From positions 2,743,416 to 2,807,415 of the forward strand of contig OZ316897.1 of assembly GCA_973895155.1 (NCBI GenBank): a stretch of DNA of 64,000 nucleotides, in the 5' to 3' direction. The DNA comes from Marsupella aquatica (lineage: Eukaryota; Plantae; Marchantiophyta). The notes under the pieces are model-generated. The model made no database searches and was not told the DNA's origin. It saw only the letters and a list, made by a program, of their open reading frames with translations. Position 1 is the stretch's first letter, and each line of letters opens with the position of its first letter. Shown in pieces: positions 12,455 through 56,943 of this stretch. The translations under genes and the position numbers were made by a program.

Positions 12455-12660
12455 AACTCCCCCTTGACTCTTGTCTTGGGGACTGGACTAAATGCTACCA
12501 TATGGAATCCTCAGCGGGAAGTTCCAGACAATCACCAAACCAGGTCTCCCCCTAAAACCACAAGGGTTAACTAAGGGTTAACTAGAACTAAGTCGTAGCC
12601 TAACAGGAATGAGTAATCCATATACAAATAGTCACACATTGTTAAATAACTCTACTTGCA

Positions 12661-16934: not shown

Positions 16935-18476
16935 ATGAAACAATCATGAAAAAACGTCTTTTTTCGAAACTTCTCATAAAACTCAAAACTCAACACCGCC
17001 GCGTAGCCCACGAAGCTAGGAGTCCAATACTGAAATCCGAAATCAAAATCGAAATTCGACAGAAAAGTTATTCAAATTTCAGTCGGGGTGGGTAAAACCT
17101 TGGGAAACTCCCCCGTTTTGACCACCTTGGAGAATAACCGAAATACCAAGTACAACCTGTCGTCGGAATCGCGATGTGATCGGTGCGCCGCATTGCTAAC
17201 TCCAGTGGCAACGTCCTCACCAAAAAAGAACCAAAAAAGTTACCGTGCGGCGGACGGAATCTTTGTGTGACGGCCGAAAAACAGCTCTCTGTTTTTCAGG
17301 AATATTCCCGCACAGTCCAACAGGGCTCACAGGGGGCCGTTCCCCCTATCGGAGCGGTTAAAACGGAGGGCGATAGGTCCCGGCACAAAGGGAAACCAAT
17401 AAGGAGGGAAAAAGAGGCAAAATAATGGCCCTAAAGGGGGTGCTTAAGCCCCTAAACAAAAAATACAGTATAAACTGGCGGGCCCGAAGGGTGTAAGGCC
17501 GGGAGTACGCCTTGGGAATTCTCGGGCAGTGTATTAGAGCGAATGCGTACGCAGCTGCGTACACATGCAGGGCCGGTCATACGACGTCAGGGCGGGGCCA
17601 AGGCAATGACTGGCGTGGTATGGCGGAGGGCATACGAGCGCGCGAAAAGCGCCGGCCGGAATTGCACAGCTCGTCGTCGCGGCTGAAGGATGAGGGGAAA
17701 ACAAGGTGCGGGGGGGGGAGTCGGGAGGGTGTGTATACACACCAAAAGTGGCCCAAACCTAAGCCAAAAATTGACTTTATAACAAAAATGTCGTTTACAC
17801 ACCTTAACAGTTGCCGTTTCCAATGAGAAAAGTGAATGCCGCCGACGGTAAATGTGGCCAAATTGCACCGGCACAGTCTGCAGCTCCACCAGAGAAAGAA
17901 CTTTTGTTGCGTCGCCTTCACTCCGCGTCAAGTGCCAATCCCGGACTCAAAACGACCGACTCGCCTCGATCTCTTCGTTGACCCTCAGCACTTCGCGTTT
18001 CTTCCTCCGAGTCAAGCATCACGATGAGTAATCCGGTTTAGGGAAAAACAAGCACCATGGCTTGTCAAAAAACCAGAACGCCTCCTTCACTCGTCACGAC
18101 GCACTCGTTCCGCAAACGTCAGCAAACTAGATACCAAAACGACCAGCACACTCCAACCTTCAACTTGAACTATCACATGCGACGCCCTGCACACCGCACA
18201 ACTCACACCGTTGAAGAAACGATCTCTGGTTTCTCCCCCGAAATACCGTCAAACACGAATAAACCCTGAACGACGCAAACTTCAATTCCTCCGCACCACG
18301 AATACCGATCAGCGAGCTCTAACCACCGTTAGAATGCCCTCTCACGAACCTATCCGCTCAGCCACACACAATCAAGTTTCATGCGACAAAACTCTGAATG
18401 TACCATCGACAATGAACGCTGGAAAAACCTGTCACGAAAAAACCTCGTCACCTCCTGGGCATGCTCTGATACCACT

Positions 18477-18820
18477 TGTTGAGCATAGACGACATTCGCA
18501 ACGGCAAGCCCATGAACCATCCAACGCACAATAGTCGACATAGAGAGATACGTGGTTCACCTCCACATGAGGCTACGTCCACGGGAACACACAAGAGCTT
18601 TACTGCACTCTAGGCCGATCGGCCATACCAAGCATCCACAGCACAAGCTCTCCCTATCTCTCAACTAGCTCCGTAACAATGAGCCTAAGTTTCACCAGGG
18701 TCTAGCATCAGCCCTGGCTATATGCACAACATCACTACCGCTAACATTAGCTAAGTCCTAACCCGAGTTAGACTAACTGTGGTTAGCTCATGAGTCACAA
18801 GACTAGAGCAATATCTAACA
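18477..18820 (-). repeat. 5' LTR of copia element
   Basis: Direct repeat of 12111-12454, adjacent to the iMet PBS. Confidence 0.95.
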
Positions 18821-21800
18821 CTCTGATCAAAAGTGTTGTTGTCATCGTATCCCTAGCTATGGCCGCTGCAGCACATCTAAGCCAGCAGTCAATTGTTGAA
18901 GTTTGCACGAAGGTCAAACTTTAACTGCACACACAGCTAAAGAATGCAGCTGAAGTTAAGATGCAAAGTTCAGACACAACGTTTTCATATGTACAGAAAG
19001 GGGCAAAAAACATCGGGAGTTTGTGAGGGGCCCTTTGTAAAAACACAGTGCTCGGTGTGCTTACACAGAGGGGAAAGAACTTTGGGAGTTTGTGAGGCAG
19101 GGAGGAAAAACATGGGGCAGGTCTGTGAGGGACTTGGTGGCTGTTTGGCCTCCTCCCGGGTCTGAACAAAGGCCCCGAGCGAGAATGGGTCGCAACGGGG
19201 AAGGGGAAGGGGAGTTAATGGTAGGTTAATCCGGACCAATGATGCCTTGACACGTTGCACCGGGAACCCCTTGGTGGGTTTACACTAAGCCATATACGGA
19301 ATGGGGGACAAACTGACAAATAATTTGGTTTGGGGGACAAGGTATCAAATTTGGCAAGTTAGGTGGGCAGGGTAATAAAAAAGCATTTTATTGAATTGGG
19401 TGTCATTAATAAAATACATTGAATTAAAGTTTATGATTTTCATTGAATTGAGTGTCATTAATAATGTACATTGAATTAATAAATGCACACATTGTAACAC
19501 CTTTGTGTCATAGCACTTGACTCTACTGTTCATTGGTCATTCACTATGTGCTTTTCTTTACATGTGTTCTGTTTACATTATTTTATGATGAATGTACTTG
19601 CAAGTACCTTGAGGAGATCAAGGGGAAGACAGGATTGGATCATGAGAGCGGGCGTAGCGCTGCGCTGCAACGATGGTGTGGGGCAGGGCTGCCTCTTGTG
19701 CACGCCAAGGGGAGGGAAGGGAGTTGGGGTGATGATCTGGGGAGCGTCCCTAAACCCTAAACCCGGTTGGGGGGGCCATAATGGCGCTCTCCCCCTCTTG
19801 GAGGAGTGGCCGTGCATGCGGCCGGCCCTCCTCCCTCTTGGTTCGCTGTGTTGACTCGGGTTCCGTGGTGGTGTCTGGCTGCCTGGTGGTTGTTGGCTTT
19901 GGGTTTGCTGCGGAGTTTTCTGTGGTGGCTGTTGGGCTCACCCTGCTCGATACCGGGGCTGCCCTCTGCACCCTTGGTGGCCGGGCCAGGGGGTTGATGC
20001 CCCGGTTGCCGGGCTGGGGGGTTGGTGCTGCTGCCCCTGGGTTTCCACGTCGGGTAGTTGGTGTTACTTCCGGTTGACACCTTGGTCTGCGCTCCTGCCG
20101 GTTCTTCCTTGAAGTCCTTCCCGTCCCCCCCCCCCTTTATTGGGTTCTTTAATTTGCCTTTGGGTTCATGTCTCCTGGTTTGGCGTTCCTGTCGTTTTCT
20201 GGGCATAAGATATATATTCACACTTAATATGTATTCTTTCTACTCTTGTATTTTATTCACTTACATATCACTATAAGACAAAATATCAAGCATGTTCCAG
20301 GATGAGCATTCTATATAGGTTTCTAGATAATTCAATAAGTGTAAATACCCACCAATATGTATGTGTGTGGAAAAAGTTATGGAACCGTAAAATGCATGAC
20401 CATGAGAAGTTAGAGTATAGGCTTCTAGACAAGGGCCCCACCAATATGTATGTCATCATGGTGGTGTTCTTGCTGTGATCTGTGTTCTCACGAGGACATT
20501 CTCCATTGCTTTTTGGTCGTGTCCAATTTTTCAGAAGATCTGGGTTTGGATCTTTGCTATTATTCAGCGTGCTGTTGGGCTGAATGTTGCCATCTTCCAA
20601 TTTGAGGCTGTTCATGTTTTCTTGGTGCATCACTTCCACATAATTGTGGTATTCCTCTTAATATCTGGCACATTGTTAGAGGGAGTACTATCTGGCAGAC
20701 ATGGAAAGCTCGTTGTACTTTGGAGAAGGAAGCACTTCTACTCTCTGTCTTGTGTATCCAGAGCATCATCTGGTCAGAGATCCGTTTATGTTTACGGGTT
20801 ATTTGGCAGAACGGATGGAAAAACCATAAAGAGAAGCGTGATTGTTGGCAGGAGTTGGTTGGCAAGTTGAAAAGAGGCGGGTCGTGATGGAGGCCTTTAT
20901 GAGTTAATAGATGAATGCTTCATTGTTGATTACGGCCCACTATGGGCCTTTGATCCTCCTTGAGATCGTTTTTGTACCAGTCTATTGGTTTCACTTGTAG
21001 TTTGCTGTGATCCAGGGCTGAATAGTTCAGTTTCTTTTGGTTTTTATGTGGCAATTAGTTATTCCGTTAGTTGGATTTTCCCTGGTTTATAGATGCTCAG
21101 ATCTTGGTTATTGGCTGGATCTCTTCCTGTTCTCGGGCTGAGTTGGCCCTCATCTTTGCTTTGGCTGCTTAGCTGGTTTCTCTGAGTGAGTCACTCAGGG
21201 TCACACAGGTTACTTCCCTGTTTAGTTTAATCTTGTTCCCTTTCCCTCTTGGCTGAATGTTGTGGTCTTGGTGTGGATTCTGGCCTTTGTTCCTTTTTTG
21301 GTTCCCACCTGTGACTCCCTGGTTTTATTGGGTTATACTTGTCTTACAAGTAAAGTGCTCCTTTCAAGGAAGAAAAAGAAAATGTTATGGAACCTTAAAA
21401 TGCAAAAGGACGATCATACATGATGATTTTTATTATCATTTCTCATGATGATTGTTGGTATCATTTCTATGAGAGATATGATTGAAAACCTTTAAAATAA
21501 AAATCATTACTTGAGGGGCCCATGAGTGATCCACACCCTTGGTATGCCTGAAATGAACGGATCTAAAATCTCATGGGGCCTGTCCATAAAGTAACACTTT
21601 TTTTTTCACTTTAGGTGTCACAAGTATGAAGTATCTCTCTCATCATTTCTTTCATGAAAGTTCATCATTTCTGTTAACTTTCAGTCTCGGGCGTTCTCCA
21701 TATTCCATTTACGTGATGCACTCGTGACGGAGTCCCTCACGGAGCGGACCAGTAGTGGAGAGCATAGCTGGAAGCAAGAGAACGTCACGATGCGTGCAAT

Positions 21801-35685: not shown

Positions 35686-38600
35686 TCAGCCAAAACCCCC
35701 ATCAAAGCCGTCACCGCCACCTTGATTATTGCTCCTCTTCCTCTCTCTCCAATTATCGCCCCAAGCTCTAGCCTCTGCAACAGCCCGTTCACGTTCTCGA
35801 GATGGAGCTACTGATCTGTTATCTTTGGGAGTCCTACCTGTGTGCCCAGGACTGTCTCTTTGAGAATCGTATTTTTCCCATTCATCTGAATCCCTTTTTC
35901 TAGCTGTACCTGTATCGGAGCCCCGACTTCCATCGTAGGACCCATTTGTCCTCCCTCTTCCACTCTCCTTTGGTCGAAGGTCAGGTGATGCTGCTGAAAG
36001 ACTAGATGGAGATCGTGGACCCCCTTGCCTCCCACCTCTCTGACGTTCTTCTGTTAAAGGAAGCATAGGGCTGTTACCGTGACGCTCCGAATGACCACTC
36101 AGCTTCTTCTCTTTCTCTTTTTTCTCCCGAGAAGGTGTAGGTGGCGCAAACCTACTACTCCCGACTGGATGGAGACCGGGATCGTAGGTTTGTGACGCTA
36201 GATAACTAAGAGCAGTCACAACGTCGCCGATGAGTGGCCTGGTAGCAGCCTGTTCTTGAAGACACATTGCTGCTACGGCCAGAGCCTGATATAATCCTCG
36301 CATCGGATACCGCCCTTGTAGCATTGGATCTGCCATAGAAGGAAATTTCCGGCGGTCCTTGAAAAGTGGTCGTGCCTACAACCACAGCAACCACTTAGAG
36401 TCATTGAGCTTCATCAAAATCGTTCCCAAATGCTAAACCGTAACTGGACAACATAAATGAAACAGTCAAAAAGTTTGTTGACGCCATGAATTAAACCAAT
36501 CCCTCTTCATAGAAAGAATTCATCACCACAACCTGCTCGCAAAATCGACCCCTTAAAGAGCACGTCGCGTAGATACGAGGGTAAACAGGGACCGTAACCA
36601 AAGCCACGTTATGTCTAACTGCAGCAACTCTAGCAAAGCTGCTGTACAAAGTGAGAGAAAACTGTCTGGGATCAATAAAGGAAAACAATCTACAGACAGA
36701 AGTCCCGATTACTTCCTCATACGACTATCGAGAGAAGAATTTTTCCCAAGTGCCCCCATCTGACGATCGTTAAGATCGTTAGGTGACATCTTCATTCTTG
36801 CAACTGGTGATGCCTAGTATACAAATATAGCTACCAAATCTCAGCCGATATAGAATGTCGCGTCAAATTAAGAGCCTCCAGCAAATGACCCCTTTTCACA
36901 CTTTCAATCTCTCCGGCCCTCGACCAACTTTCAAATCACTTTCAAAGCATGGAATTCATTGGTGCTCAGTGACCATACCCAAGCCACGAGATTGTGCTCG
37001 CCAGCAGCCCTCGCATTGTCTATAGCCTTCCTTCCCGTGATCAGCTCCAACAAGACAACCCCAAAACTGTAAACATCCGACTTCAAAGTCAACTGCCCTG
37101 TCATAGCGTATTCCGGAGCACAGTAACCATAGGTTCCCATCACACGAGTGGAGACGTGAGTTTTATCTCCAACTGGCCCCAGTTTGGCAAGCCCAAAGTC
37201 TGACAACTTCGGGTGGAAATCTTCATCCAGTAGGATGTTGCTAGACTTGAAATCCCTATAAATAACAGGCGGATTGGCTTTGTCGTGCAGATATTCTAGT
37301 CCTCTTGCTGCTCCAGCTGCAATCTTCATTCTCGTGTTCCAATCCAAAGGTTCTTTATCGGGGGGTAAATCTGCATTCAATAACCCACCCAAATCGCACT
37401 GGTCAGTTTTGAGCTGCAATCTCGAAAACCAGTATGACCACCCACGATCTAATAAGCCGAAGGCGGTAAATACATGTACAAATTCAGGGCCATATTGATG
37501 TTGGAATGTATCTGGACCCTCATAAGAGATCGTTACAGCCGCTTGATGTTAACATTTAGAAACCCCTGAGATACAGTATCGATTGCGCAGCAAAATGAAA
37601 CGAAAAAGGCGACACAAAGTCGACTGGAGTACACTTTAAGATGGCTTTAACGTTAGTGGCAGATCTCACCATGCAAGTGATCCTCCAGAGACCCAAGAGG
37701 CATATATTCGTACACTAGCAGTCTCTGGTCCCCGTCAGCGCAGTAACCGATCAAATTCACGAGATTGGGATGGTGAAGGAGGCTCAACATCAACACTTCC
37801 ACCAAAAATTCACGATTTCCCTGAAGCCCATTCCGATCCAGCTGTTTCACAGCCACCACCTGTGGATGATTGCATTTGGAAAGTCAGGAAGGACATCGGA
37901 GTTCCATGGACAAACAATACGAACGCCAGGAAATGCCGACACAGTCTACAACTGTCCATTCTCGGAACCCTCTGACGCCTGGAATGTAAAGAATGAAAAG
38001 TCCCGAGGAATTCCGCAAAGAACTTGCCTGGCCAGTGCTCTCCATACGTCCCATGTATACCCGACCGAAACCTCCTTCGCCCAAGAGACATTCCGGTCTG
38101 AAGTTCTTCGTCGCAGCGGCAAGTTCACGGAAGGTAAATGTTTGTGCTGCAATATGGGTTGCTCCATCATTGTTCGGAGCTATGTTCTTAACATCACCCG
38201 AATTTCCTTTTCTGATCTTAAGATCTGCACCGTAAAAACCACACAACAAGTTAAAGGTGAGGAAGTACCAGAAATCCTACGCGGCACTAGAGTTTGCTAC
38301 CTACAGGCTTGATCCCAGTTCCTCACAACGTCACACTCCAGAGCAGATGGAAGACGACAGATCAGCCAAATCGCAGATCCGAAAGGCGAAGGAATGGTGC
38401 GAAGCGGGGTACAGAGACATCCCCCTGCCAAATAACCAGCTACTGGCAAAAGGGAAGGCAGCATTCAAGAATTAAACATCGCAGAGGGCACTTAAACCAC
38501 ATCAGGTCTTCTCCGGCAACATCGCAGCGCCAGGACACTGTCAATTAGACCACAGGGCCATGCGGCGTATGATGAACGAAGTCCGGCACAGTTGCGACCT

Positions 38601-41080: not shown

Positions 41081-43812
41081 TAGCCATTTTTTCCTCATGT
41101 TGGGAAGAACTGGTTTTTTTAGTCTTGGGCAATGTAGGGTGAAGTCATGAGTATCTGTGGTCTGAAGGAGGTATGATACCGTACGTTAGTCTTAGTAAAC
41201 ATACACACTTAGATCTGCCACAGTTTCAGGATGACCATCAGATCTAGCCACAAGTCTTAGACAAGGAAGATGAATGGCCAATTTTTCCAGTGTTAATTTT
41301 TTCTTGGCATTCCAAGACAAATTCTGGGCAAGAGTTTAGCAAAAATTTACCACTAAGAAAAACATGGGAACGGAGTGAGGGGCAACTTCCCTGCTTCCCC
41401 GCAAAGCTTTTTCCATCATAAAAATTCTGGCATATGCATGTGAGCCATTTTATTTCCCTAATTTCAGGAGAACCATTAGATCTGACAGCTAACTGTCTTA
41501 ATAAGATAAGGATGTGGCAAATAGAAGGGGAGATCTATCTCTAATATATTAAGTTGCCACAGATTTTCCAGGTATGTATAGGTAAAATATATATCCTAGT
41601 TTTGGCCCATATACAACGTTCAAACCCAGCCAATACTGATCACTACAGTCAGTGGAGCAGTAGTTGTAAAACCCCCCTTCTATACTGTTACAGTAACTTC
41701 ATGGAGATGTAGAAACCTCTATATAGTCTTGTAAAAACCCCGCCAGCTCCAGTAAAGTTGTGAGGGCAGATTCACTTGGCTGTGCATAGTAAAGCTACAA
41801 TAAATAGTGTTGTAATACAAAATCTGTCATATCAAAGAGAGACAGATTAAATTTGTTGAGCAAGAGCATCCCCACCCATCATGCCAATTCCAGGACACTA
41901 TTGGCCTAGGTAGGGGTAAGTTTAGATAGCTGTCATACATACAGGCGGGTGCACCCTGCTTGGAGCCCCACCCATCTTGGTTGACTGGAAGCTCTAGCAG
42001 CATTGGCATCAGAGGAGGTGAAAGTGACATTGTTGGGCATCTGTTGATCTCTTCCAGAATGGGCAATGTTGTCAATGTGTGATGGCGTGGTGCATAAGCC
42101 GGGATTCAATTCATGGCCGGGAAGTTGGATGGTGATAGTGGGCCACTGAGTGGGCAACAATGGATTATAGTTGTTTGGTTTGATTTGCAAATGGTGCCAA
42201 ACTTGCACCTGCCCAGACACTTTGAGGACAGGTGGGAATGCTCTAAAGTAAAGCTAGCTCTTGGAAGAGGGTGATATTCTTTTACATAAAAGCTTGTTGT
42301 AAGGAATTCCTCACAAGGACAATAACACAACCCTTCAAACTAATACACTATAAAATTGTTTGTATTGCATGTGATGTGAAAACGCACTTGTCCACATAGT
42401 TGATCACCTGCATTCTAAAATACATAGCCTGTCCTTACAGGCCCCTTCAATCATAGGTGCCTTTGTCACGAAAAGTGCATCCAAAATATGAGTATTCAAA
42501 GAAATGGGGGTTGCGTTTCACAAGAAATCAAGTGGATTGTGGAAAACCAAACCTTAAATTGATGAATGCATGATCTGAAGACCATTTCTATATTCCCTGT
42601 CCTCATCCTCCAGCCCCCTTTTGGGATCATGGGCAACTATTTGGTCGGTTACATTGTAGCAAGACAACCCTCCCCTGCTATACAACTTTTTTTCCAATTC
42701 TCCCATCCACATTTTGTAGCCATCTTCCAAGATCTGGGAGATGTTTGAGTCCATCAATGACTATAGAGCTTACTTAAGATTGGAACTTCAATTGGAACAG
42801 TGCCATTCTATTTGAGGAACTACCTAGCAGAGACATTGTCTTGCTTTGGACCAAGTTTTTTGAGAAAGTTTGCAAGAAGCACAATAACCTTGATGGGGCT
42901 CTATCATCTAAGCAATTCATAGCATTCTGAGGAAGAAACGGGGGAAGAAACTAGAAACGCACAATGTGAAATCAGGTAATCAAGAAATAATTTTTGACAT
43001 GACATGTTACCCTTTGTTCAAGCCGGTAGCTACTGCCTATGTGCTTGCTATAAAATTAACAGTGGAGGACGGCAGAGGCAAACTTGCCAAGGAAGAAAGC
43101 AGATTGTGAACCTGTTCGCTAACACTATTTTTGAAACAATGAAAGCTATGACTAATTGCACGTTGAATGAGTTTTGACCTGCATTGACTTGGAGGGGGGG
43201 CTGCAGGAGGACGGTGGAGATGGAGGAGGAGGAGCAACGTCTAGATTGACATTAACCTAAGAAAACAACTAGTGAGGCATTAGAGATTTAGTCAACATTA
43301 TATATAGTGCATAGTTTATGGCCATTATGTAGAGTCTAGATCATTATAGATTCATTATGTAGATTGTGATTAGATTATAAGCTTTTCAAGACTCAGCCAA
43401 GTGGACTTTCTTTGAAATCTCATTTGGACTTCCATATCATTTAGACTTGTGAGTCATCAAATTGTAAAATTTTCTTACATAATCAATAACTTTGATCTCC
43501 ATCTTTTTTTCTTTCTTTTTTTTCTTTATCTCCATCTTGGAATTTCTCCTTATGTAAAAGTCCAAAATTGTTTTCTCTAGCTCCGTTATCACTTATATAA
43601 CCCAGACTAGCCCTATGTTCATGCGTTGCACAGAAGATGTTGAGTCAAGGCAAGGATATCAAGGTGAGTCAAATTTGTCAAGGCAAAGCAAGTTTAGATG
43701 TCAAGGTGAGGCAAAGATGTCAAGACGAGAAAAGAAATGCAAGGGAGGCACAAAAGTGCAGGAAAGACAAAGAAATGTAAGCAAGGCCAAGAAGGCAAAA
43801 GAAATGTAGGTG

Positions 43813-45143
43813 AGGCCTGGAAGGAGATCACGATCCCAAAACATGTTGGCGGCTTAGGCATCCTCCCCTTCAATGAGATGGCACAAGCTCTTAAGATGCG
43901 ACACCTCTCGAAGCTCATCCGTGATGAGGGTTGTGAATGGGTGAGAATGGCACACATAATAATTGAGGACGGACTGAAGACTGGACCCAACAAAAAAGAG
44001 AGACGCAGATGGAGCGCAACGGAAGCAATCCTGTTGAGCGATGAGCTGGTTATCAAAGGGTCTACTACCCTTAAGGGCCTTCTCAAAGGGTGGTATGCAA
44101 AATGTACACACTTAACCTTTCACTTTGGGGTGGGCGAACTCCCGGACAGCTTGTCGATGGAACAAATGGTCCTTCTCTACACACGGGACATGCAATCAAC
44201 TAGCACGGAACAGGAGGGGAAGGAACTGAGAAGATACATGGCTAACCGCAGCATCAAACAAGCTACATACTGGTGGAACACACAGACTGGATGGCTGACA
44301 CAGGAGGCTCTCAACACCAAAATCAGAAGCAATAGACACAGAGGATACCCAGAATTCTCCAGATTCTACACTCTCCTAAGGGGATGCTCTGGCCTCTCCA
44401 CGGTAGGATTGCAGACGTGCAAAGGATGGAAATGGAAGTGGCAGGGCTGCAATCGGGGGTGGACTTTCCCCAACAAAGTGTGGACCAACTGTTCCCCACC
44501 AACCATCCAGGACCCCAATACTTTAAACAGAAGATGGGGGCAACAACGCACACCTGAACAGTGGAGCAAACTCTGGAAGCTACTCTGGAAGGGATGGACC
44601 ACACCGAATGTCAGGTTCTTCATTTGGAGACTACTACACCACGGTTTCTTCAACAACGGCAGAGGCAACAGATGGAAGGTCTGTGACGGAATATGTTCCA
44701 GGTGTAAGACTGACATTGAAACCACAAAACATTTGTTCTTCAGTTGCCCTAAGGTCCAAGATCGTTGGGGCGATATGCGCAGGCTGGTGCAGAGCGCCCC
44801 CTCGCTTTGATCCCCCGCTCACTTGCTTTTTGAGGCCATCTATGGTGCCATCATTCGGCAAAAAAGGAAACCGGGCCCTGTTATTATGATAATGGAGATG
44901 TGTAGCAATATCTGGAAAGAGAGGAACGCGGCCACGTACTCTCAATTCCTTGGGCATCTCCCAGGGTGGGTGACTCTCAGACATACAGAAATGCACCTGA
45001 GAGCTATGCTCACCTACTGCAATTCCAACAAAAAAAAGAAACAGGTCAGGACTGCTCTGGATCATCTAAACATCATCCTTGCCCCTTGGGAGAAGACTGA
45101 CAGCCCCATTGCTCTCAACTCTCTCAACTATGAAGATCGATGA
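43813..45143 (+). pseudogene. 5'-truncated L1-clade LINE ORF2 C-terminal region (zf-RVT)
   Basis: AWKEITIPKHVGGLGI, FIWRLLH, CSRC..IETTKHLFFSC and NIWKERN are plant L1 motifs. In-frame stop at 44808-44810. No RT core present. Confidence 0.85.
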
Positions 45144-45695
45144 TTTTGGTGAATGTGGTTTTAAGCCCGAGCGGCACTTCTGTAGGAGTGATAGGTGGTA
45201 TGATATTGTTCACATTGTTGACTACGTTAGAGATAGGTTTATGGTTGTTATGCGTAGGGACACTCATTTTACGAGTGTCTGGACTCCTAAGGACAGCCAA
45301 TAGAGGAATTATGAGTATCTTGTGTACTTACACCCTCCGTATAGGGGTAGAATTGCTAACGGACATTTTTACAGAGACCGTGGGGTGAATGGCCGCACGT
45401 GGCTGCCCTCTGTCTCTTGGCCGGATTAGGTTGTTTGGCTTGCTGTGCTCCCGGGGCGGCGGTTGTCCCTGGGTTCGCGTCTGTTTTTTTCTCTCTTGAG
45501 CGGGGTTCTCCCCCGGTTCCCCCCCCCCAAAAAAAGAGGAAGTTGTTGAGATATTTGAGGTGTTGTTACAACAATTTTGCCCCAATATGTTGTTGCTGCT
45601 ATGCGGTCATGCAACCATGTTTTTGTTGCCAAGCTCAATTCTCAAACATTGCACAGGAAGCTGGAGGTAAAGTAAAGAAGTGCACACGAGGCCAA

Positions 45696-46052
45696 TGTCA
45701 TGCCGAGGGACAGTGCCTCCTGTGCACATCGGCATGTCCCTCGCATGCCCGCTAGGTATGTAGTTAGGGCTAGTGTACTAATTGAGTTAGTGTCATGTTT
45801 TTGTAGCGAGTCTGGGTCATTCTTGAAGCAAAGGTGTTTGTTAGTGTGATGCCTGGACCCGGTCCTACTTAGGGCATGTTTTTCTTTGTCGTTTTTCAGT
45901 TCTTCTTGAACGCTGTTGACAGAGCTCAGACAGTGCTTGTCGGTTCAGTACACGGGATTCACACAGTGATTCGTTAGATGCTCCCGGCCGATCTTGGCAT
46001 CCCGCCGGTTTTCGATTCGATTTCAGTACGATTGTTTCTCTTACGCCTTTTA
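45696..46052 (+). repeat. Terminal repeat A1 (357 bp)
   Basis: Direct repeat of 55065-55422, about 10 differences counted by eye. Confidence 0.93.
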
Positions 46053-46066
46053 TTCAAGAAGAACTG
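46053..46066 (+). promoter_or_regulatory. Self-priming type PBS
   Basis: ttcaagaagaactg directly after A1 is the exact reverse complement of cagttcttcttgaa (45897-45910) inside A1. Confidence 0.72.
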
Positions 46067-49000
46067 GTCGAGATAGTGGTGAAGGGAAGAAGATTGCTCG
46101 TGACAATTTTGACAATTTCTGGTGAAGCCATTGCAATTTCTTCGACAGACATCGGAGTGACGAGTTAAAAGTTATGGGTTTATTATGGTGTTATGTGTAT
46201 ACTTAAGTGTATACACATAACAAGGGGCCCAGATTTTTCTTGCCTGCCGCAACTCGATCTGCTTCCATAATTGCTTTTGACTATGGCTACTGACTGCTGA
46301 CCTTTTTTGGGCCATATTCGGTGTTTTCCGGTCGCAGCGCGACCACCTTCCCTTCCCCTTACATTTTGACGACCCTTTGGGGTCCTGTTCTTTCTTTTCC
46401 ATCATCGGCCGTCATTTCTTTTTGCCTCCCCTTGCAGCTACCGTTGCGAGCTGCCTCCCTGTCCTGCCTGTGTATACACATGCGGGGCTCATCATTGCCC
46501 CTGGGTTGCGCATAGGGCCATGCGCCCTCCCTTCGGCGTTTTTCTTCCTCCCTCGCCTGTTTCCAGCAATTACACAGTAGGGAAGGGGGATTAAGTTGAG
46601 GCATAAGCATGGAGAGGGCACGAGGCCCTATTATGCATTAAAGCAGGGGCAAGGGGGAGGTGAAAGCAGGAAGGAGGGGGAGCGAGTGTTAGGAGAGGGC
46701 ACCAAGCCCTATGTTGCATTAAAAGGAGGGGGAGGGGGAGTTCACATACGACTCCCTTCTCTAGGGAGTACTTTCACCAGGGCACGAGGCCCACAGAAGC
46801 ATTTAAGGAGGGGATTGAGGGGGAGTTCGTAGCCTCCCTCTTCGAGAGCTCATAAGGAGAAGGGGGGGGCGCGAAGCCCTATGCTGCATTAAACGGAAGG
46901 GGAGTACATTCAAGCCAGGCACGAGGCCCACAGCGCATTTAAGAGGGGAGGGGGAGCTCATAAGGAGAAAGGGGCGCAAAGCCCTATGCAGGGCTCGAGC
47001 CCATTAGGGGCCGTTTCTTTTTCCTTGCCTCGCCCTTTTATTTTTGCCTCGCTTTCGCTTTTATTCGCTTGCAGCATATCGCACGGTGCCCCCGAGTGTG
47101 TATACACACTCGCTCGGTTGCCGGTCCCCACCTGATTTTTCTTTTCGTCGACGCGCACCTTCTGTCAGTTTCTGGGTCCACGTCGGGGCCGACATATACA
47201 CTTAAGGGGGCCCCTCTTTCACGTTTTTTTGGCCATTTCTTTGCGGATTTCTTTGTTGCTGCCGACGGTCATCTGCATAGGGTTGCGGGCCCGGGGTATA
47301 CACATGGGATGGCAATCCAACATTGCCTATGTATACACATAGGCAAGTGCGACGGGGACACAATTTGAGGTTTTAAGGGTCCTTTTCCCTGATGGTCTTT
47401 CGACGGTGACGGGTTTTCTCAGTCTTTACACATTTTGCACATTTTGGGTACATCGGGTATTGTCACACAGCATGTCAGTAGACGAGCCAGGAGGTAGCAG
47501 CTCATCACCACCAACACCCCGGTACCACTTACGGAGTGATCCACGACCCTTGGTGCCAATTTCATTGGAGTCTCGGCAATTTCGACGACGTCCGCAGACA
47601 GCAGCAGCACCCACACCACGCAATCCTTCTGCTCAATTTGGCGGTCGCTTCACCACAACCCCGAAACCTGCTATCACTTCCTTGCCATTTACCCCTTCTG
47701 CATCAGTGGTTGTTCCAGCTTCACCGGCATACAGCATGGATGCTAGCCACTCATCTGGCCGCATTGAGCGCTTCAGCGGGCGGCCAGGCACTGTTTCTTT
47801 GCGTGAGTTCAAATCCACTTTCTATACTATTGTTTACAAATTGGAGTTGAAGTACGGCAACAATTTCACAAATGCTTTTGCATTTAAGCAACTAGCCAGG
47901 TATGTGCACCATGAGGCTTTGGATGTGTATGAGCAGCACTCTCAACGGCTGCTTGCTGTCACACAATTGCCTAATCCTACCTATGCTAGTGCAATTGCAG
48001 CTGCCTCACAACTGGCATTACAGAATGCCATTGCAGCCCATGCTGCTGCTCCTGCTACTTCCCCTCCTACTCCAGTTCCTACCACTGCGCTAGTTACTCC
48101 CATTGTCTTGGCACAGGCTACATCAGGCATTTCTCCCACTATTGATTCTCCTGCCTTTGCTGATCCAATGGCTGAGTTTTTTCAGGTTCTTGAATTGGAA
48201 TTCCCAATCAAGAGTGCTGACAAAATCATGCAGTTGGCTACCTTTGTGAGGCAACGCGATGAAACATTGAAGATGATGTATTGCCGGCTTCTCAAGCTGA
48301 AGGAGGACACCCAGAGCATCACTGACCTAGAGGCTACGCATCGCTATCTTCGTGCATTGGAGGGCACACCAGCTCTCCATTCGCAAGTGTTGCAGCAAGT
48401 ATTCTCAGAGTTTGGAGACAGCAACACATTGCTCAATGTCTATGACACTGCTGAGAAACTTGAGTTGGCCCATGCACATTATGAGGCCAGTATTGCGCGT
48501 CCACTGCGCGATCCAAGTACTAGGTTGCTGCCCCTACATTGGCCACCCCTTCCCGTTTGCCATAATATGGTTCCAAGACCAAGCCAGCACATGCTGCTTT
48601 CATGCTACCATCTTGTAACTACTGTGATAACCCTAATCACAAGGCTAATGATTATGATATTGTTGCTGAGGACCTGTCTTGTGATTTTTGCGGGAAAGTG
48701 GGCCACTTGGAGGCAGTTTGTTTTGCCAAATTCCAAGAGAGGAAGTAGCTACGACAGCAGGCCCCTCATCCTGCTCCTGCTTCCACTCCCCCACCAGCTA
48801 GGAGGGCTCCTATTGCCTTAGTTTCTCCTCCTTCCAGTGGCAAAGCACCCGGGGCCAACAAATTGCCCAAGCAGCAACAGAAGCAGCTAGCTCAGAAGGA
48901 GGCTCACAACGCACAGGCAACTCAACTCCAGTCTCTGACTCATGAGGTTGAGTCCCTATGTGCCCAACTTGCCAACATCAAAGGCAAGTCACCTGCCTCT

Positions 49001-50584
49001 GCTGGTCCCTCTCAACCGGTTGGTCACGTGCAACCGATCCCTGGCCCAGGCACCACTGACAGTTCAGCACCTCTTCCCCGCTCTTTCTATGGCTTGCCAT
49101 TTGATGCTCATAGGGGTGAGTGTGTGCTGTCCTCTACTACACAGCCTGGCCTTATGGCAGAATTTTCAGATTCATTCTGCCCTTCCTATTTTGCTTACCA
49201 GCAGGCCAGTGTTGCCTCCCGTATTGCTCCCACCCGCCGCATTGTACAGGCTAATGGTCTTGCTGCTGGTCCTATGACTAGAGCCAGGGGAGCTCGGGCT
49301 GTCATGCCCCAATCTTTTCAGCCACTCATACTTGTTGAAGACTGCACCTTGTTGGCGAGGGGGGAGGGAGCTGCAGCTACATCCATTCCACCACCAGGTG
49401 CTACTGACATTTCACAGGGAGTTGTTTCTCCTGAGCTGCTTGAGCATGTCACCTCCGGTATGGCACAAAGGATTCTTACAACTCCACTTTTCAGTTGCCA
49501 TGATTTATAGCTGGATGCTAGAGCTGTCATCAGAGCACTAGAGGGCTCACTGCATTCTTCATCAGCCCCTGTGACACCGGTTTTGGAGGTCCAATCTCAT
49601 GTACATACTGGACCTTCTTCTTCTCCATTACATGCTTCCACTGGTTTGGCTATCCCAGTACCAATTTCCAGTGGTACAGATGATAGTATTGTTGCAGATT
49701 GTGTGACCAGAGCTACAATGGATTCTGGTCATGCTGCTCCATCTTTCCTAGCTATGTTGTTGAGTGGGAAGACCGTGGACACTAACTCCCTTCACAAGGT
49801 ACCTCATCATTTGCCAAAAGTGGTGCCTAGTGACAGGACTTTAGTTTCCACCACCATTGCCATTGTTGACAATAGGAATTCAGTGGTCAAGTTGGAGGGT
49901 CACACTCCTCAGGTGGTCATGCTAGACACAGGCGCTCAACCAGTGATATTGGGCATTCAATTTGCCAAGAAGATGGGACTACTGACTGATCATTTACAGC
50001 AATCCAGGTGGCACATTCGGACTGCTAGTGGCACTGTGGAGGATGTGCTGGGTGAGAGTTCTACTTTACTCACTTTCACTTTTAATGGAGGTACAGATCA
50101 GGAATTGCATTTCCCAGTCAGATATTTGGTTACCAATGCCACTACGTATGATGTGCTCATTGGCCAGGAGGCTTTGTTCCCACCAGGTTTTACCATTGAC
50201 AACTGGCATGAGCATGCATACTACAGAGTTGATTGGCATACGGATGGCTCACACTTGGGCTACATTCCACTTGATTTGCATGGTGCTCATACACCTATGG
50301 CTCACCACTGTGTGTTGAAAGCAGTGCACACAACTACCTATGTCAACCACCCATTGTAGGATTGGATTGAGGAGGATGATGATGAGGTGGTTGCTGCACA
50401 TGCTGCTACACGTATAGCAGCACTTTCCATCAACGTGGATCATCAACCAGAGGTGGTACAACGGCTCCAAGCAGCCCATGGACCTTTGGTGGCTGCATTG
50501 CGCAAATTTGAGGACCTTGGGCAGCACAATGGCCAACCAATAGCCCCAATCTTGAGCGCACCAGTTACATGGACTCCTCCTTGA

Positions 50585-51510
50585 GATGGCCTTACATTGC
50601 TTGAGCTTTTTGGTGGCATTTCTACAGGCCTGGAAGCTCTCCTACAGTCTGGCATGGTGGTGAAGTAGTACATCTATGTGGATATTGATCCAGGTGCAAG
50701 GCAAGTGGCTGAATCCCGTCTACTGGAATTTTTAGAGCGATTTCCCTAGCAGTTTCCACACAATGCATGGAAGTCTGCATTTTCTTTCTTCCCTCCAGAT
50801 ATCCAGCTTGTCCAGCACCGGCACTTAACCCTTCTTGGTTCCCTTGATTTGATCATAGCTGGTTGGGAATGCCAAGGGTTTTCAGCTGCTGGTCACGGTG
50901 CTGGACTGCATGATTCTCGTTCTGGCCTTTTCATAGCATTGGTTCAGATTCTCACCTGGGCTCAATCCCTTTATCCTGCTGTTGGTTATATCATTGAGAA
51001 TACTCCATCTCAGTTTGACCAGCGTCCACAGGTGAAAGAGGATTTCAGTGTGGTCCAGCACTACTTGGGACCACCCCTTCTCATTGATGCAGTGCACTGT
51101 GGTTCTTATGCACATCGTTTTCGTAACTTTTGGACTAACCTTGCACCACCTTCCTTGTTGGAGTTAGCTCTTCACCACACATCCAGGGACACTAACCTCA
51201 CAGTGGACCAGATTTTGGATCCTGACAGTTCTTGCCAACTAGTTACACGACAAGAGTCAGCACCTTGGTATCCAGCCAATACCATTGGACAGCCCCATGC
51301 TGCTTGGCCTACATTTGTGTCCTTTCCAGGTGCACATGCTTTTCAGGGTGATGGTCCTGGCCTGGTTTACCGACATTCTACCGGTACATGGGATGAACCT
51401 AGTCCTGAGGAGAGAGAACGGGCTATGGGCTTGCAATCCGGTACTACAGGCCACACCCACATCACCAGGCTGGCCAGGAATGCTTTACTTGGCAGGGTAA
51501 TGGATCTCAC
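50585..51510 (+). pseudogene. C5 cytosine DNA methyltransferase domain (DNMT3-like motifs) within pol
   Basis: Same frame as PR and RT. Motif I LLELFGGISTG, II YVDID, IV DLIIAGWECQGFSAAG, V DSRSGLF, VI YIIENT, VIII AHRFRNFWTNL, IX PEERERAMG, X RLARNALLGRV. Stops at 50666 and 50747. Confidence 0.88.
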
Positions 51511-54500
51511 TGCTCTCACTTGGCTTCTGGTCACTTGCATCCTTTTTCAGATGTACATTCATCCAGCATCAGGAGTTCCAGCCCTACCACTCCATGGTGC
51601 TGCTACATGGCATCCAAACCAGGTGCACTTACCTCTATTCAACACTCACCGCTTCAGTCCAAGTGTTGGGGGGGAGGAGGTCCCTTGTAATGTGGCTGAC
51701 ATTATTTCTGAGTTTCATCGTGTGGATCAGACCAGAGCAACAAGTACAACAGGCCTTGGAGAGGCCTCATCACCTTATCAGCAGCATGCTAGCAGCTTGG
51801 ACAGTGGAGAGGCTGGCACTTCTGGCTCTTCAAGCATGAGTACATCAGGTCCTATTCCTAGTGTTGCCAACTACACATTCATCATGGGCAACCACTTGAG
51901 TAAAAGATAGAAGGACCAGCTGCTGAATTTGCTCCTCAAGCATGAGAACGTGTTTGCTTTCTCTATGAAGGACTTGGGTAAGTGCAAGACTATGCAGTTC
52001 TCCATTGAGTTGGCTAATGAAACACTTATCTTCAGGCGGAGACATCGTTTGAGTAAGCATGAGTGGCAGCTGGTGGATGAGAGGTGCCAAGAGTTATATG
52101 AAGCTGGTCTTATTCAGCCATCTACATCAGATTTTGCAGCAGCTACAGTGATGCCAGCAAAGAAGGATTCCAGTGGATTGTGGACAGAGAAGCGCATGTG
52201 TGGGGACTACAGGCCATTGAACCTGGTCACACCCCAGGATAGGTACCCCATGCCACGGCCAGAGGAGTTATTTGACAGGATTGGAGACTCAGACATCTTC
52301 ACTCTTGTGGATCTAAGGCAAGGCTTCAACCAGATTTTGCTGTTTGCAAAGGATCGCAAGAAAACAGCTTTCCATGGTAGTAACCAACTATGGGAGTGGT
52401 TGGTGATGCCATTTGGCTTGAAGAATGCGCCCATATTCATTCAAAGAGTCATGGACCAGGTTCTTCAAGGTGCTGAGTTTCTGAAATGCTACATTGATGA
52501 TGTGTTGGTCCACAACAAAGGATTTGACCAGCATCTACTTGACCTTGAGGAGCTATTCATGAGGCTTAAGAAGGTGAACCTAAAGATACACCCCAAGAAG
52601 TGTGAATTTGCTGTCAGATCAGTAGTATATCTTGGGGATCGCATTCTTCCAAATGGAACCATGGCTCACTGGGCCAAGGTGGTATCCATCTTGGAAATGC
52701 CCACTCCTACCGATGTTCACACTTTGAGGAGTTTTATTGGGTTGTGCAATTACTATCGGATCTACATCAAAGATTTCAGCATCATTGCACACCCATTGTA
52801 TGCTTTGTTGAAAAAGAATGTGACTTGGACATGGAGTATAGATGCTGAGGCAACATTTGCCACTTTGAAGGAGAAGCTCTCAGAATACCCGGTGCTGAGA
52901 AGACCTAATTTCAGCAAGGTCTTTGTGCTACACACAGATTGGAGTGCCCTTGGGATTGGTGCCATTCTGGGCCAGCATGATGAGGAAGGTAAAGAATACG
53001 TCATTGCCTATGCATCCAGGAGCAACAATCAGGCATAGAGTCATTATTCTTCTTATGAGGGTATGCCTTGCTGTTGTGTGGGCTGTCATACATTACAGAC
53101 CCTACCTCTATGGGACCAGGTTTGTTCTCTACACCGACCACCAGCCCTTGAAGTGGTTGATGACCAACGAGAAGCTTGCTCGTTGGGCGCTCATACTCCA
53201 GGAGTATGATTTTGAGATAATTCATAGGCCTGGTGTGACACATCAAAATGTTGACACTATGTCCCGCAGCCCTTTGATTGCCTCTGATGATTCCTCAGAT
53301 GCACGACAGGATTTCGACCAGGTTTCCATCCTGCCTACATTTCATGCATCTACCTATCTTGCTTTGCTGCCATGCTACGTTGTTGACCAACCTGTGGTGG
53401 ACATATGGGAGGACAACGACACTCTGAGATTTTTGCAGCATGGGGAGTACCCCATACATGTTACTGCTGCCCAGAGAGACCAAAATCAGCAAAGGTCCAA
53501 GCGTTACTTGTGGAAGGGAGATCATCTCGTGCGCTGCTTGCCAGACAAGGAAGTGGTGGTTCCACCCATTTATGAGAGGGTTGGCCTTATCCGTAAGGTA
53601 CATTCTGAGCTTGGTCATTTTGGCGTTAAGAGGACTTACAGCCTCTTGGTCCCTCATTATCATTGGAGAGGCATGCATGGCCAGGTTCAAGATGTTATTG
53701 CCCGGTGTGAACAGTGTGATAGGGTGAGGACTTCTTTTACATCTCGGCAACCCACACTTCATCCACTCCCTATTCAGGGCATGTTTTATCGTTGGTCATG
53801 TGATTTGGCTCGAGAATTACCCCTCACATCTCGGGGTAATCTCTACATCATGATCATGATAGAGCATTTCTCCAAGTGAATAGAACTTGTGGCATTGCCG
53901 GATAAGACCTCCCGTAGCACCAGCCTAGCATTCCTACAACAAGTTCTCAGCCACTTTGGAGCTTGTGCAGAATGTCTCACTGACCAAGGCTCAGAGTTTA
54001 GAGGAGAGTTCTAGGAGCTGCTTGATCAGGCCGTCATTGATCATCGTCTGACATCACGAGATCACCCACAGGCAGATGGCTTGGCAGAGCGCATGGTTCA
54101 GACATGCAAGAAGGGTCTCCAAAAGATTTGCCTCACCAAAAACAAGGAGGATTGGGACCTGGCCTTACCCTACATTGCCATGGGGTATAGGATGTCTAGA
54201 CATGCATCATTGTCTAACTTTTCTCCCTACTTCTTGTTGTTTGGTCGTCACCCAGTTCCACCTTCTGCTATTGCTGCTCACATGCTTCAGGTGGTGGACT
54301 TGGATTCAGTTGTGACTTGGTCTGATGTGATCTCTGAGAGGGCTGCCCTATTCAGGAGGGTTATGCCCATGGCCATGGAGAATTTGGCCATTGCACAACA
54401 TAGGGACACATTGCGTTATGCACACACACAAGGGGGCACTTTTCAGCCCAAGGTCAGGAAGTTTGATGTGGGAGATTTTGTGTACTTGCAGCGGCAAGCT

Positions 54501-54695
54501 AACGACACCTTGGACACCTCTACCAGTCGTACTATTCTCAGGGTTAAAGCTATTCGACCGTCTGGAGTGCTAGAGTTACAAGGGGCAGATGGGCGCACAA
54601 TTGTTGACAATGCCAAGAATTGCGCCCCTTGTCATCTGCCTAACTTGGATCCCACCATTGTGACTTCTACCTGGATTCCACTTGTGGACTACCCT

Positions 54696-54830
54696 TGCAA
54701 AGTGTGTTTGCGAATTGATGATGCTGACCAGATGCTGCTGTGTGATAATTGCAATGGAGGGTACCATCTTTTTTGCCTTCAGCCTGAACTTACCCAGGTG
54801 CCAGAAGGGTTATGGTTTTGCCCTTCCTGT
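54696..54830 (+). other. PHD finger at integrase C-terminus
   Basis: C4HC3 pattern CKVC...MLLCDNCNGGYHLFC...VPEGLWFCPSC. Confidence 0.9.
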
Positions 54831-54887
54831 GCTCCATGTACTACCTGACTTTTCTTCAGCCCTCCTTTTGGCTGTGGTCTGGGGGGA

Positions 54888-55062
54888 TACAGAGGTTTAC
54901 ACCTCCACTACGTACATACCACCGTAGTTGCTTTTTCTTGGCACTTGTGAATGTGATTGGACTTTTTCTAAGGATGTTGGTTGCTAGCAGCTTGCACATA
55001 TGCATTGCCGGTGACTTGTATGTTTTCGATACACTATGGCTACGATACTATATGTCATGACA
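54888..55062 (+). repeat. Repeat B1 (175 bp), preceded by short PPT gggggga (54881-54887)
   Basis: Direct repeat of 55423-55597, about 6 differences. Ends catgaca. Confidence 0.92.
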
Positions 55063-55064
55063 AC

Positions 55065-55422
55065 TGTCATGCCGAGGGACAGTGCCTCCTGTGCACATCG
55101 GCATGTCCCTCGCATGCCCGCTAGGTATGTAGTTAGGGCTAGTGTACTACTTGAGTTAGTGTCATGTTCTTGTAGCGAGTCTGGGCTGTTCTTGAAGCAA
55201 AGGTGTTTGTTAGGGTGATGCCTGGACCCGGTCCTACTTAGGGCATGTTTTTCTTTGTCGTTTTTCAGTTCTTCTTGAATCGCTGTTGACAGAGCTCAGA
55301 CAGTGCTTGTCGGTTCCGTACACGGGATTCACACAGTGATTCGTTAGATGCTCCCGGCCGATCTTGGCATCCCGCCGGTTTTTGATTCGATTTCAATACG
55401 ATTGTTTCTCTTACGCCTTTTA
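55065..55422 (+). repeat. Repeat A2 (358 bp)
   Basis: Direct repeat of 45696-46052. Starts tgtcatg. Confidence 0.93.
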
Positions 55423-55597
55423 TATAGAGGTTTACACCTCCACTACGTACATACCACCTCAGTTGCTTTTTCTTGGCACTTGTGAATGTGATTGGATTTT
55501 TTCTAAGGATGTTGGTTGCTAGCAGCTTGCACATATGCATTGCCGGTGACTTGTATGTTTTCGATACACTATGGCTATGATACTATATGTCACGACA
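55423..55597 (+). repeat. Terminal repeat B2 (175 bp)
   Basis: Direct repeat of 54888-55062. Ends CA and is followed by the TSD ccaa. Confidence 0.92.
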
Positions 55598-56943
55598 CCA
55601 ATAAGTTTTGTAGTTTGGCTGTGTCTCTCATGTAGTGACGCTATGGTTGCAAAGGTGTCATCATTTTGGTTGAGTGCATCTTACTGCCAAAATATTGTCA
55701 TTTTGATCAATGGTGTTGCTACAAACTTGATATTGAGGGGAGTGACGGCACGAGAAGGGGATAGTAGCACAAGATGGGCAATGGCGGCGGGGCATTGCAG
55801 GGTCCAAGGACAGGTCCACACTTGGCCTATCTTTTCAGTGCTACATGGAGGGATAAGTTTTTTTTTCATTTTTATCTTTATTTCCCTCCCCCACACCCTC
55901 TCGCTCCCTCACTCCCACCCTTTGCTGTCACCACCATCTTCTCTTGCGTATTGTAGGCAGAATGGAGCCTTAAGGAGGGCACATTAGGGAGGGAGGAGGC
56001 ACACGTGGTGAGCCAAGGCATACAAAGTGCACAGAGATGGCAGGGAAGAGGGGATTAATGGTTTTTTTGGTGAATCAAATTGTTCGAAAACAATGGGGTT
56101 CCAACAGACAGCCATAAGTTTATTGTGATTTCATTGTGAAAAATGTTGTCATTGCACATAATCAATTGATGCAGTAAACTCAAATCAACACAAAAGCCGG
56201 GGATAGAAGGCTCAAATGGGTAGTGAGAATAGGGGCAAGAGTCAGGTTAGAAATCGGCAGTGTCAATGATACAGAAGATGGAACAAAAGCAAGGGATGAA
56301 AGGTGCAATTGGGGCAAAGCCAGAGCAAGACTAACACAGATGCCGAGGCATGTCAAGCAAGCTAGGTCTTGGAAAAAGAATGTAGGGAGCTTGGTCTAAT
56401 CCTGGGTCTTATTGGCCCACATTGAAAAAGCTTGTCTTTATATTAAAGGTCTCTAAGCTCATCTTTAAGAAGAATGTTGGAAGTTTAGATGGAAGAACAA
56501 AATTTTGGACTTTTTCTCTAAAACTTTAAAATGATAAAACAAAGTTTTAAATTTTTTGAAAAACCAGACTCACACTTTTTTTGTTTTATTCATTTTGGGG
56601 AAAGGCCTTGATGTTGTTGTAAAAGTGATATAGTAGGGGAGGGCAAGAGAGAGTGGGAGGAGCACAGGAGAGGCTATGGCCACCAGGGCTTTGTGAGTTC
56701 AAGGTGTGCTTGCACGATGCTATGTGGAGGGAACATCTTCAGTTTTTCCCCTCTTTCCAGTTTTCCCTTCCTTGCCCCTCAGTTCTCCCCCCCCCCCCCC
56801 ACTTTGTTCCATTTGGCACGACCAAACAAATATAATAAAAAGATAAGGAGTAAATAACTTATTATTTTTATAAGTTCCCGTACTCAAAAAGCCAAGCCTC
56901 TCATGCCCTAAAAGATTCTCATGCAAACGTACTTAAGTTCCGG

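Follow-up and report, generated by a model that had tools for sequence, protein, structure and literature searches.

A retroelement in a 64,000-nucleotide stretch of the liverwort Marsupella aquatica (contig OZ316897.1; the whole stretch is called the window here) combines a DDE integrase and other coding features of Ty3/gypsy elements with split direct repeats in the order A1-body-B1-A2-B2. The element occupies positions 45696-55597 on the plus strand, and all coordinates below are positions of the window unless another locus is named. This layout is a trait of the element's family and not a local rearrangement. Judged by its domain set, the element is best filed as a land-plant member of the KnitGypsy-Dnmt3 lineage, previously described from the charophyte alga Klebsormidium nitens. 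We favour, with somewhat better than even confidence, the reading that it is a Ty3/gypsy-type copy of this Dnmt3 lineage whose integrated form is a circular permutation of a complementary DNA (cDNA) with two long terminal repeats (LTRs), produced through the cycle proposed below. Two parts of that reading, an internal attachment site and joined cDNA tips, appear well supported by the copies compared.

A search for repeats, together with BLAST of this region to the whole window, placed A alone at the 5′ end and B-A-B at the 3′ end (Table 1). A1 and A2 are 97.2% identical (10 differences over 359 columns), and B1 and B2 96.6% (6 differences over 176, with B2 starting at 55422 or 55424). A2 directly abuts B2, and their border is ambiguous by 2 nucleotides (nt), AT. 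BLAST recovered neither a third copy of A or B in the window nor a further copy of the element elsewhere in it. A opens with TGTCATG and B closes with CATGACA. Only the spacer ac (55063-55064) stands between B1 and A2, and the internal junction reads CATGACA-ac-TGTCATG. This palindrome is, to judge from the borders, an internal copy of both integrase end-sites, 2 nt apart. The tetranucleotide ccaa lies directly before A1 and directly after B2, and A1 would hold the promoter part, R and U5. The original prediction for this region, drawn from the letters alone, had described the A-internal-B-ac-A-B order, the TG..CA ends with a ccaa duplication at the start of A and the end of B, and the similar divergence of the two repeat pairs. 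Each of these held up under repeat finding, BLAST and direct reading of both flanks, and the divergence of the two pairs also proved similar across related copies.

The single copy in the window is all that speaks for a conventional LTR element (A+B or B+A) altered by a one-off rearrangement, or for an assembly artefact. With the piece encoding integrase and PHD finger (IN-PHD) as query, hundreds of relatives were matched, in the liverwort Calypogeia fissa (86% identity), in JGI and ENA metagenome contigs, in Sphagnum magellanicum gene models and in K. nitens (52%); the metagenome contigs with related copies also hold plant-type genes. We compared the C. fissa locus and three metagenome loci, and then 80 metagenome loci found with the reverse transcriptase (RT) piece as query. 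Each locus was compared with itself and annotated with libraries of A and B, and duplicates of the same insertion were removed by their flanks. All 20 independent 5′ ends carry A alone, the form A-B-A-body-B occurring in 0/20. Among about 36 independent 3′ ends, 19-21 are B-A-B, found in the liverwort genome, in metagenome contigs and in K. nitens, and about 14 are B alone. The complete A-body-B-A-B copies (L019, L038, L060, L064 and L083/L084) all start with TGTCATGCC and all end with GTCA(C/T)GACA. Perfect 4-bp duplications flank eight insertions (ccaa in the window, tgac in L060, tgtg in L064, tgca in L026, ccaa in L033, catg in L058, ccac in L020 and caat at a solo unit in L025), and in the older L019 and L038 the duplication agrees at 3 of 4 bases. 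The spacer between B and A is always 2 nt in the relatives, most commonly GC and also AC, AT or TA. Identity of A1 to A2 and of B1 to B2 falls in step, from 97/97% in the window through 91/92% in L019 to 84/88% in L038 and 84/86% in L064, which fits both pairs having been identical at insertion.

Terminal architecture and duplications were in this way tabulated copy by copy, as the original prediction had proposed. Matched conventional LTRs at both ends, which it held would reduce the locus to an isolated event, were looked for and found in no surveyed copy, the window included. Many independent insertions, in separate assemblies and taxa, show this layout with their duplications intact, which excludes misassembly, and the differing flanks and duplications exclude descent of all copies from one segmental duplication. 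The survey thereby refutes a one-off rearrangement or misassembly, to which we attach next to no probability. No intact polyprotein was found among the 80 metagenome loci, where the longest stop-free stretch is 554 amino acids.

Several loci show further peculiarities. The C. fissa locus, L001, was considered as a complete copy and set aside: its 3′ end is B-A-B, and its 5′ end is truncated, with homology starting late in the protease. Upstream of it, at 1660-2236 of L001, lies an inverted, 99% identical solo A-B unit without a matching 4-bp duplication; the solo A-B unit of L025, with its perfect caat duplication, spans 16842-17322 of that locus. An insert of about 415 bp in the RNase H-integrase region of L001 (9434-9848), possibly a small non-autonomous transposon, recurs about 10 kb downstream (19298-19711) and has a 75-bp inverted partial copy (7358-7432) about 2 kb upstream, between the methyltransferase and RT regions. 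In L023 (3525-3960; the same insertion as L030), an inversion takes in A1 and the leader's first ~140 bp, and about 1 kb of unrelated sequence follows. We judged this inversion of the first ~440 bp to be a secondary rearrangement and not a DIRS1-like inverted repeat.

Which LTR reverse transcription would build can be read from two conserved sites. In most copies with a 5′ end, the 11-15 nt that follow A1 form a perfect complement to a site that lies 160-200 nt into A, with a loop of 110-140 nt between the two; the sequences paired in this way in the window are TTCAAGAAGAACTG and CAGTTCTTCTTGAA. Compensatory changes keep the pairing in the window (TCAAGAAGAAC/GTTCTTCTTGA), L064 and L037 as against the common TCTAGAAAAAC/GTTTTTCTAGA, and the minimum-free-energy RNA fold of 45897-46070 closes on the self-primer stem (z = -1.9). 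Complementarity and covariation together fit the self-priming signature of Tf1-type elements (Tf1/sushi/Tcn1); the priming itself we infer. A primer site of the transfer RNA (tRNA) type, with TGG at the A1 border, was considered and rejected in favour of self-priming: it is absent in the metagenome copies, and the TGG of the window lies at 46065-46067, 11 nt downstream of A1 and not at the border. The original prediction of a primer site at the end of A1 was thus right about the position, where the self-complementary site abuts A1, and needs correction in that the site is of the self-priming and not of the tRNA type.

At the other side of the body, a polypurine G-run precedes every B1, those of the liverwort and K. 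nitens copies included. The tract directly before B1 is GGTCTGGGGGG in the metagenome copies (followed by ATACATG), GGGGGGG in C. fissa and GGAGGGGAG in K. nitens. The self-priming site would place the transcript start inside A and make the end of A the end of U5, and the polypurine run before every B1 would make the start of B the start of U3. With the primer site at the A end and the polypurine tract at the B start in every copy, the LTR built by reverse transcription is B+A, as far as conserved and covarying sequence can tell, and the TG..CA ends and 4-bp duplications fall at the B-A palindrome within it. Both the polypurine tract at B1 and the B+A LTR had been foreseen in the original prediction.

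The A2/B2 junction, where the tips of such an LTR meet, reads exactly A-end plus B-start (..CAAT/ATACATG..) in most copies, and its offset among copies is -3, -2, 0, +1 or +3 nt. The loss of 2 nt at the AT overlap occurs in three separate lineages and in the window, the extra bases at +1 or +3 (T, TTT) match the first bases of the primer site, and -3 nt is seen in one copy. These variants are scattered on a tree of the B-A region and do not follow LTR phylogeny. One-sided deletions with one edge exactly at the junction occur in two copies: L020 retains the intact A-end, followed by the last 29 nt of B, and L024 retains an almost intact B-start, which meets the first 78 nt of A in a TACAT microhomology. 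Variable joints with one-sided losses are the pattern of ligated retroviral LTR tips. The scattered variants and junction-anchored deletions argue that A2/B2 represents joined cDNA tips, remade at each cycle.

In the cycle that we propose, transcription would start about 200 nt into A1 and run through B1 into A2. The 5′ end of the RNA would fold back onto the site after A1 and prime the minus strand, as in Tf1, and the plus strand would be primed from the G-run before B1. Reverse transcription would give the LTR B+A and the cDNA BA-body-BA, in which the integrase end-sites (TGTCATG.. and ..CATGACA) would lie not at the LTR tips but back to back inside the LTR, as a palindrome with a 2-nt spacer. 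The cDNA tips, A-end and B-start, would be joined, in a closed circle or otherwise, to form A2/B2. The DDE integrase would presumably then open one palindrome, that in the LTR adjoining the primer site, and insert the resulting ends with a 4-bp duplication, leaving A-body-B-A-B. Foamy-virus and HIV-1 integrases cleave palindromic LTR-LTR junctions, in vitro cutting two back-to-back end-sites at CA dinucleotides to give integration-ready ends (PMC1180852, PMC1905944), which makes the chemistry of the proposed opening plausible. The retroviral palindrome, however, forms only on ligation of LTR tips, and its use is accessory or debated. In the window family the palindrome is built into each LTR, the ligated tips (A/B) are not the integrase site, and the route would be obligatory.

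Several points weigh against this cycle. The evidence is read wholly from integrated copies, mostly old and broken, and the A2/B2 variants could partly be post-insertion indels in old copies. About 14 independent copies (L026, L033, L058/L074 and about 10 further loci) lack A2-B2 and read A-body-B only, with their 4-bp duplications intact; on the RT tree they stand among the B-A-B copies. They could have arisen by later B × B deletion, or as a second type of integration product that uses one half-site per LTR. Finally, a symmetric two-LTR circle with two identical palindromes predicts A-B-A-body-B as often as the form observed, and none of the 20 5′ ends has it. The original prediction, a circle inserted through an internal attachment site, is accordingly supported in part: the internal site and the joined tips are well supported, and the asymmetry contradicts a simple symmetric circle.

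The strict asymmetry is accounted for by a route that starts from linear cDNA. Here, integrase would cut the palindrome of the 5′ LTR before any circle exists and insert the new ends, and the host would end-join the A-end and B-start tips; the 5′ LTR would be duplex first and the 3′ LTR still single-stranded when integrase assembles. Such a route also accounts for the end-joining traits of A2/B2, namely the variable joints and the resection-like one-sided deletions, and it predicts A-body-B copies, with both palindromes used after complete synthesis, and such copies exist. It is, however, purely inferential and would demand repair of a chromosome break at every insertion, which is seemingly costly; the sequences do not separate it from the circle model. 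We consider it unlikely, if worth keeping in mind.

Pfam scans of stop-free open reading frame (ORF) pieces (at least 50 amino acids, element strand), together with motifs and a read-through translation, gave the order of the body as gag(CCHC)-protease (PR)-C5 DNA methyltransferase-RT-RNase H-integrase (IN)-PHD finger. The PR-RT-RNase H-IN order of Ty3/gypsy Pol is present, with Pfam matches in order across 49511-54250. An H2C2 zinc domain is followed by a DDE core in which the D, D and E motifs (WSCDL, TDQGSEF and ADGLAERM) are legible on read-through, interrupted in the window copy by two in-frame stops (53877-53879 and 54012-54014). The piece at 54015-54845 is 86% identical to the relative P0001, which scores rve and PHD, and intact relatives of the integrase show H2C2, PF00665 rve and PHD. 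The integrase's C-terminus carries a PHD finger (PF00628) instead of the chromodomain of Tf1/sushi/Tcn1 elements. Several more stops and frameshifts run along the window element, which by these signs is dead, a decayed copy. The methyltransferase sits between PR and RT with a PF00145 score that exceeds the curated cut-off. It is 66% identical to that of the C. fissa copy, and the domain is also kept in other relatives; for one of these, P0121, the sole solved-structure matches were DNMT3A/B/C, at weak E-values (2e-4 and above). The leader between primer site and gag contains degenerate tandem or dispersed direct repeats (46600-46990, ~80-85% identical), in which Tandem Repeats Finder called no array in the window; repeats lie at a like relative position in metagenome copies (L008 573-1098, L022 75-462, L025 5021-5405, L059/L060 2175-2584).

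In the same scans no ORF piece matched a tyrosine recombinase family in Pfam even at E up to 1, and this held for the unassigned ORFs (the gag-like 47343-48818, 48749-49507 and others); Pfam may miss divergent recombinases, yet the gag and spacer ORFs leave little unassigned coding space. The claim of a DDE integrase without a visible tyrosine recombinase was thus confirmed, by PF17921, the DDE motifs, rve in the relatives and the missing recombinase match. The A1-body-B1-A2-B2 layout is that of split-direct-repeat retroelements (PMC4157794, PMC5890265). The window family shares it with PAT, TOC1/TOC3, Ngaro, VIPER and SymbioDIRS-Dnmt3, all of which encode a tyrosine recombinase, whereas the window family encodes an H2C2/DDE integrase and has TG..CA ends flanked by 4-bp duplications. 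The RT, RNase H and IN of the family match gypsy-type Pfam families. Tyrosine-recombinase (DIRS-type) retroelements are not known to make target-site duplications. Because it lacks a tyrosine recombinase, makes duplications and has a gypsy-type RT-RNase H-IN, the element is not a DIRS, PAT or Ngaro element.

The shared layout could nevertheless reflect a shared way of making it. In a route driven by reverse transcription, like that of DIRS/PAT, the A2/B2 and B1/A2 junctions would be copied from the parent RNA or formed by template switching, not by joining of DNA ends, and the split repeats would serve only to regenerate ends lacking in the transcript. PAT, Ngaro and SymbioDIRS elements have the same layout (PMC4157794, PMC5890265), and the AT and TACAT microhomologies at some A2/B2 junctions fit template switching as well. 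We think this route improbable, given a DDE integrase with 4-bp duplications and TG..CA ends in place of a tyrosine recombinase, a primer site and polypurine tract exactly where the classical LTR pathway needs them for B+A, and junction variants that do not follow LTR phylogeny.

The layout is not new among gypsy elements, and the novelty suggested in the original prediction was overstated. De Mendoza et al. described KnitGypsy-Dnmt3 in 2018 as a gypsy element whose Pol includes a methyltransferase of the Dnmt3 type, its repeats being "the same as that of a DIRS retrotransposon" (A-coding-B-A-B; Fig. 4c legend), and treated the acquisition of the methyltransferase as specific to the K. nitens lineage, without giving element ends, target-site duplications, primer sites or a mechanism (PMC5890265). 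A full-text literature search returned no other paper mentioning KnitGypsy-Dnmt3. The window element and KnitGypsy-Dnmt3 share a gypsy-type Pol that encloses a Dnmt3-like C5 methyltransferase, and the A-coding-B-A-B repeats; they differ in host, a bryophyte as against a charophyte. At the K. nitens locus L085 the IN-PHD protein is 52% identical to that of the window, and the contig begins inside the integrase and lacks the methyltransferase part. Its 3′ end reads GGAGGGGAG directly before B, then CGCGACA-GC-TGTCACGCC at the B-A junction, and closes with CGCGACA before flanking ccta, the motif CGACA-GC-TGTCAYGCC being shared. Layout and terminal motifs are thus conserved between charophyte and bryophytes. 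It is through the IN-PHD piece and these motifs that the window element is linked to K. nitens; a homologue search with the methyltransferase returned no K. nitens protein, probably owing to the word and length limits of the search. What this analysis newly adds is the reach of the lineage into bryophytes, the conservation of the palindromic ends, the duplications of 4 bp, the site for self-priming and the anatomy of the junctions. C. fissa also has more distant gypsy elements with a methyltransferase domain (L001 14512-16188 and L086 5949-11149), 31-40% identical to the window element in the methyltransferase and 45% in RT; no terminal repeats were detectable around L086.

Two further systems bear comparison. 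In mosses and club-mosses, elements of the Tcn1 clade are predicted to be self-priming (PMC6317226). Tf1/sushi, plant Tcn1 and the window family alike lack a tRNA primer site and have a U5-adjacent site complementary to the presumed 5′ end of the transcript, but Tf1/sushi/Tcn1 elements have ordinary matched LTRs and an integrase chromodomain, whereas the window family has split repeats, a PHD finger and the methyltransferase. In the copy-out-paste-in transposition of bacterial elements of the IS3/IS30/IS911 type, a DDE enzyme integrates a circle through abutted ends with a short spacer. These are DNA transposons without reverse transcription, and their likeness to the window family is one of analogy only.

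Split direct repeats are treated as a hallmark of tyrosine-recombinase retroelements, and LTR-finding software assumes matched LTRs, so that elements such as the window family are missed or misclassified. In this family, conserved between a charophyte alga and bryophytes, the split-repeat layout goes together with a DDE integrase, primer sites of the classical kind and clean duplications of the target; with it, the gypsy lineage that carries Dnmt3 reaches beyond Klebsormidium into land plants. Three questions become tractable here: whether joined cDNA ends or circles can be the regular substrate of a retroelement integrase, what gives rise to split repeats, and for what reason a retrotransposon should encode a Dnmt3-like methyltransferase and a PHD finger of its own. 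In its widest form, our proposal is that an ancient DDE-integrase LTR lineage of charophytes, liverworts and probably mosses obligatorily integrates via a palindromic end-site inside its LTR, every provirus being a permuted two-LTR molecule with split direct repeats; we would put this at slightly short of an even chance. If true, it would be a mode of retrotransposition intermediate between classical LTR elements and DIRS/Ngaro elements, and split direct repeats would follow from integrating joined cDNA ends, whatever the recombinase.

Table 1 Features of the split-repeat element, in window coordinates
Feature	Position	Strand	Basis
Target-site duplication, left copy (ccaa)	45692-45695	+	Same tetranucleotide at 55598-55601
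A1, 5′ terminal repeat, starts TGTCATGCC	45696-46053	+	97.2% identical to A2; no B upstream
Putative self-primer sequence inside A (CAGTTCTTCTTGAA), presumed 5′ end of the transcript	45897-45910	+	Perfect complement of 46053-46066; same position in relatives
Putative self-priming (Tf1-like) primer binding site (TTCAAGAAGAACTG), abuts the end of A1	46053-46066	+	Complementarity to A
Gag-like ORF, 492 codons without stop, no Pfam match	47343-48818	+	Stop-free stretch; Pfam scan
CCHC zinc knuckle, in another frame than the gag-like ORF	48680-48721	+	Motif
Aspartic protease, DTG at 49925	49511-50356	+	PF13975, E 9e-07; motif
C5 cytosine DNA methyltransferase domain within Pol; motif IV ECQGFS, motif VI ENT	50750-51907	+	PF00145, E 1.8e-06
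Reverse transcriptase (YIDD at 52490) and start of RNase H	51911-53035	+	PF00078, E 1.8e-26; PF17919, E 3.3e-17
End of RNase H and integrase H2C2 zinc domain (53574-53733), another frame	52899-53876	+	PF17917, E 9.4e-16; PF17921, E 1.4e-13
Integrase DDE core, interrupted by two in-frame stops	53780-54250	+	Read-through translation
C-terminal PHD finger	54696-54830	+	PF00628, E 3e-12
G-run, 3′ end of polypurine tract, abuts the start of B1	54881-54886	+	Border reading, conserved
B1, internal B copy, ends GTCATGACA	54887-55062	+	Repeat finding, BLAST
Palindromic B-A junction, GTCATGACA-ac-TGTCATGCC	55054-55073	+	Border reading
A2	55065-55423	+	Repeat finding, BLAST
B2, 3′ terminal repeat, ends CACGACA	55424-55597	+	A2-B2 border = A-end + B-start, 2-nt AT overlap
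Target-site duplication, right copy (ccaa)	55598-55601	+	Border reading

The rest of the window holds other mobile-element sequence and a probable trace of a host gene. A 357-codon ORF with a zf-RVT domain (43737-44807, plus strand), probably a LINE-type fragment, lies less than 1 kb upstream of the left end of the element. On the minus strand, at about 12111-18776, is a Ty1/copia element with gag, Pol beta-barrel, rve and RVT_2 ORFs, whose direct repeats, from 12111 and 18477, share 99% identity over the 300 nt shown; the insertion appears young. Among named relatives of its RT, the best matches come from liverworts (Calypogeia, Marchantia, Riccia; 69-71% identity). A protein kinase domain (PF00069, E 3e-25) is encoded by an ORF piece at 36934-37419 on the minus strand, probably an exon of a host gene. 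Near the start of the window, two identical 149-nt direct repeats (689-837 and 2195-2343) lie 1506 bp apart.

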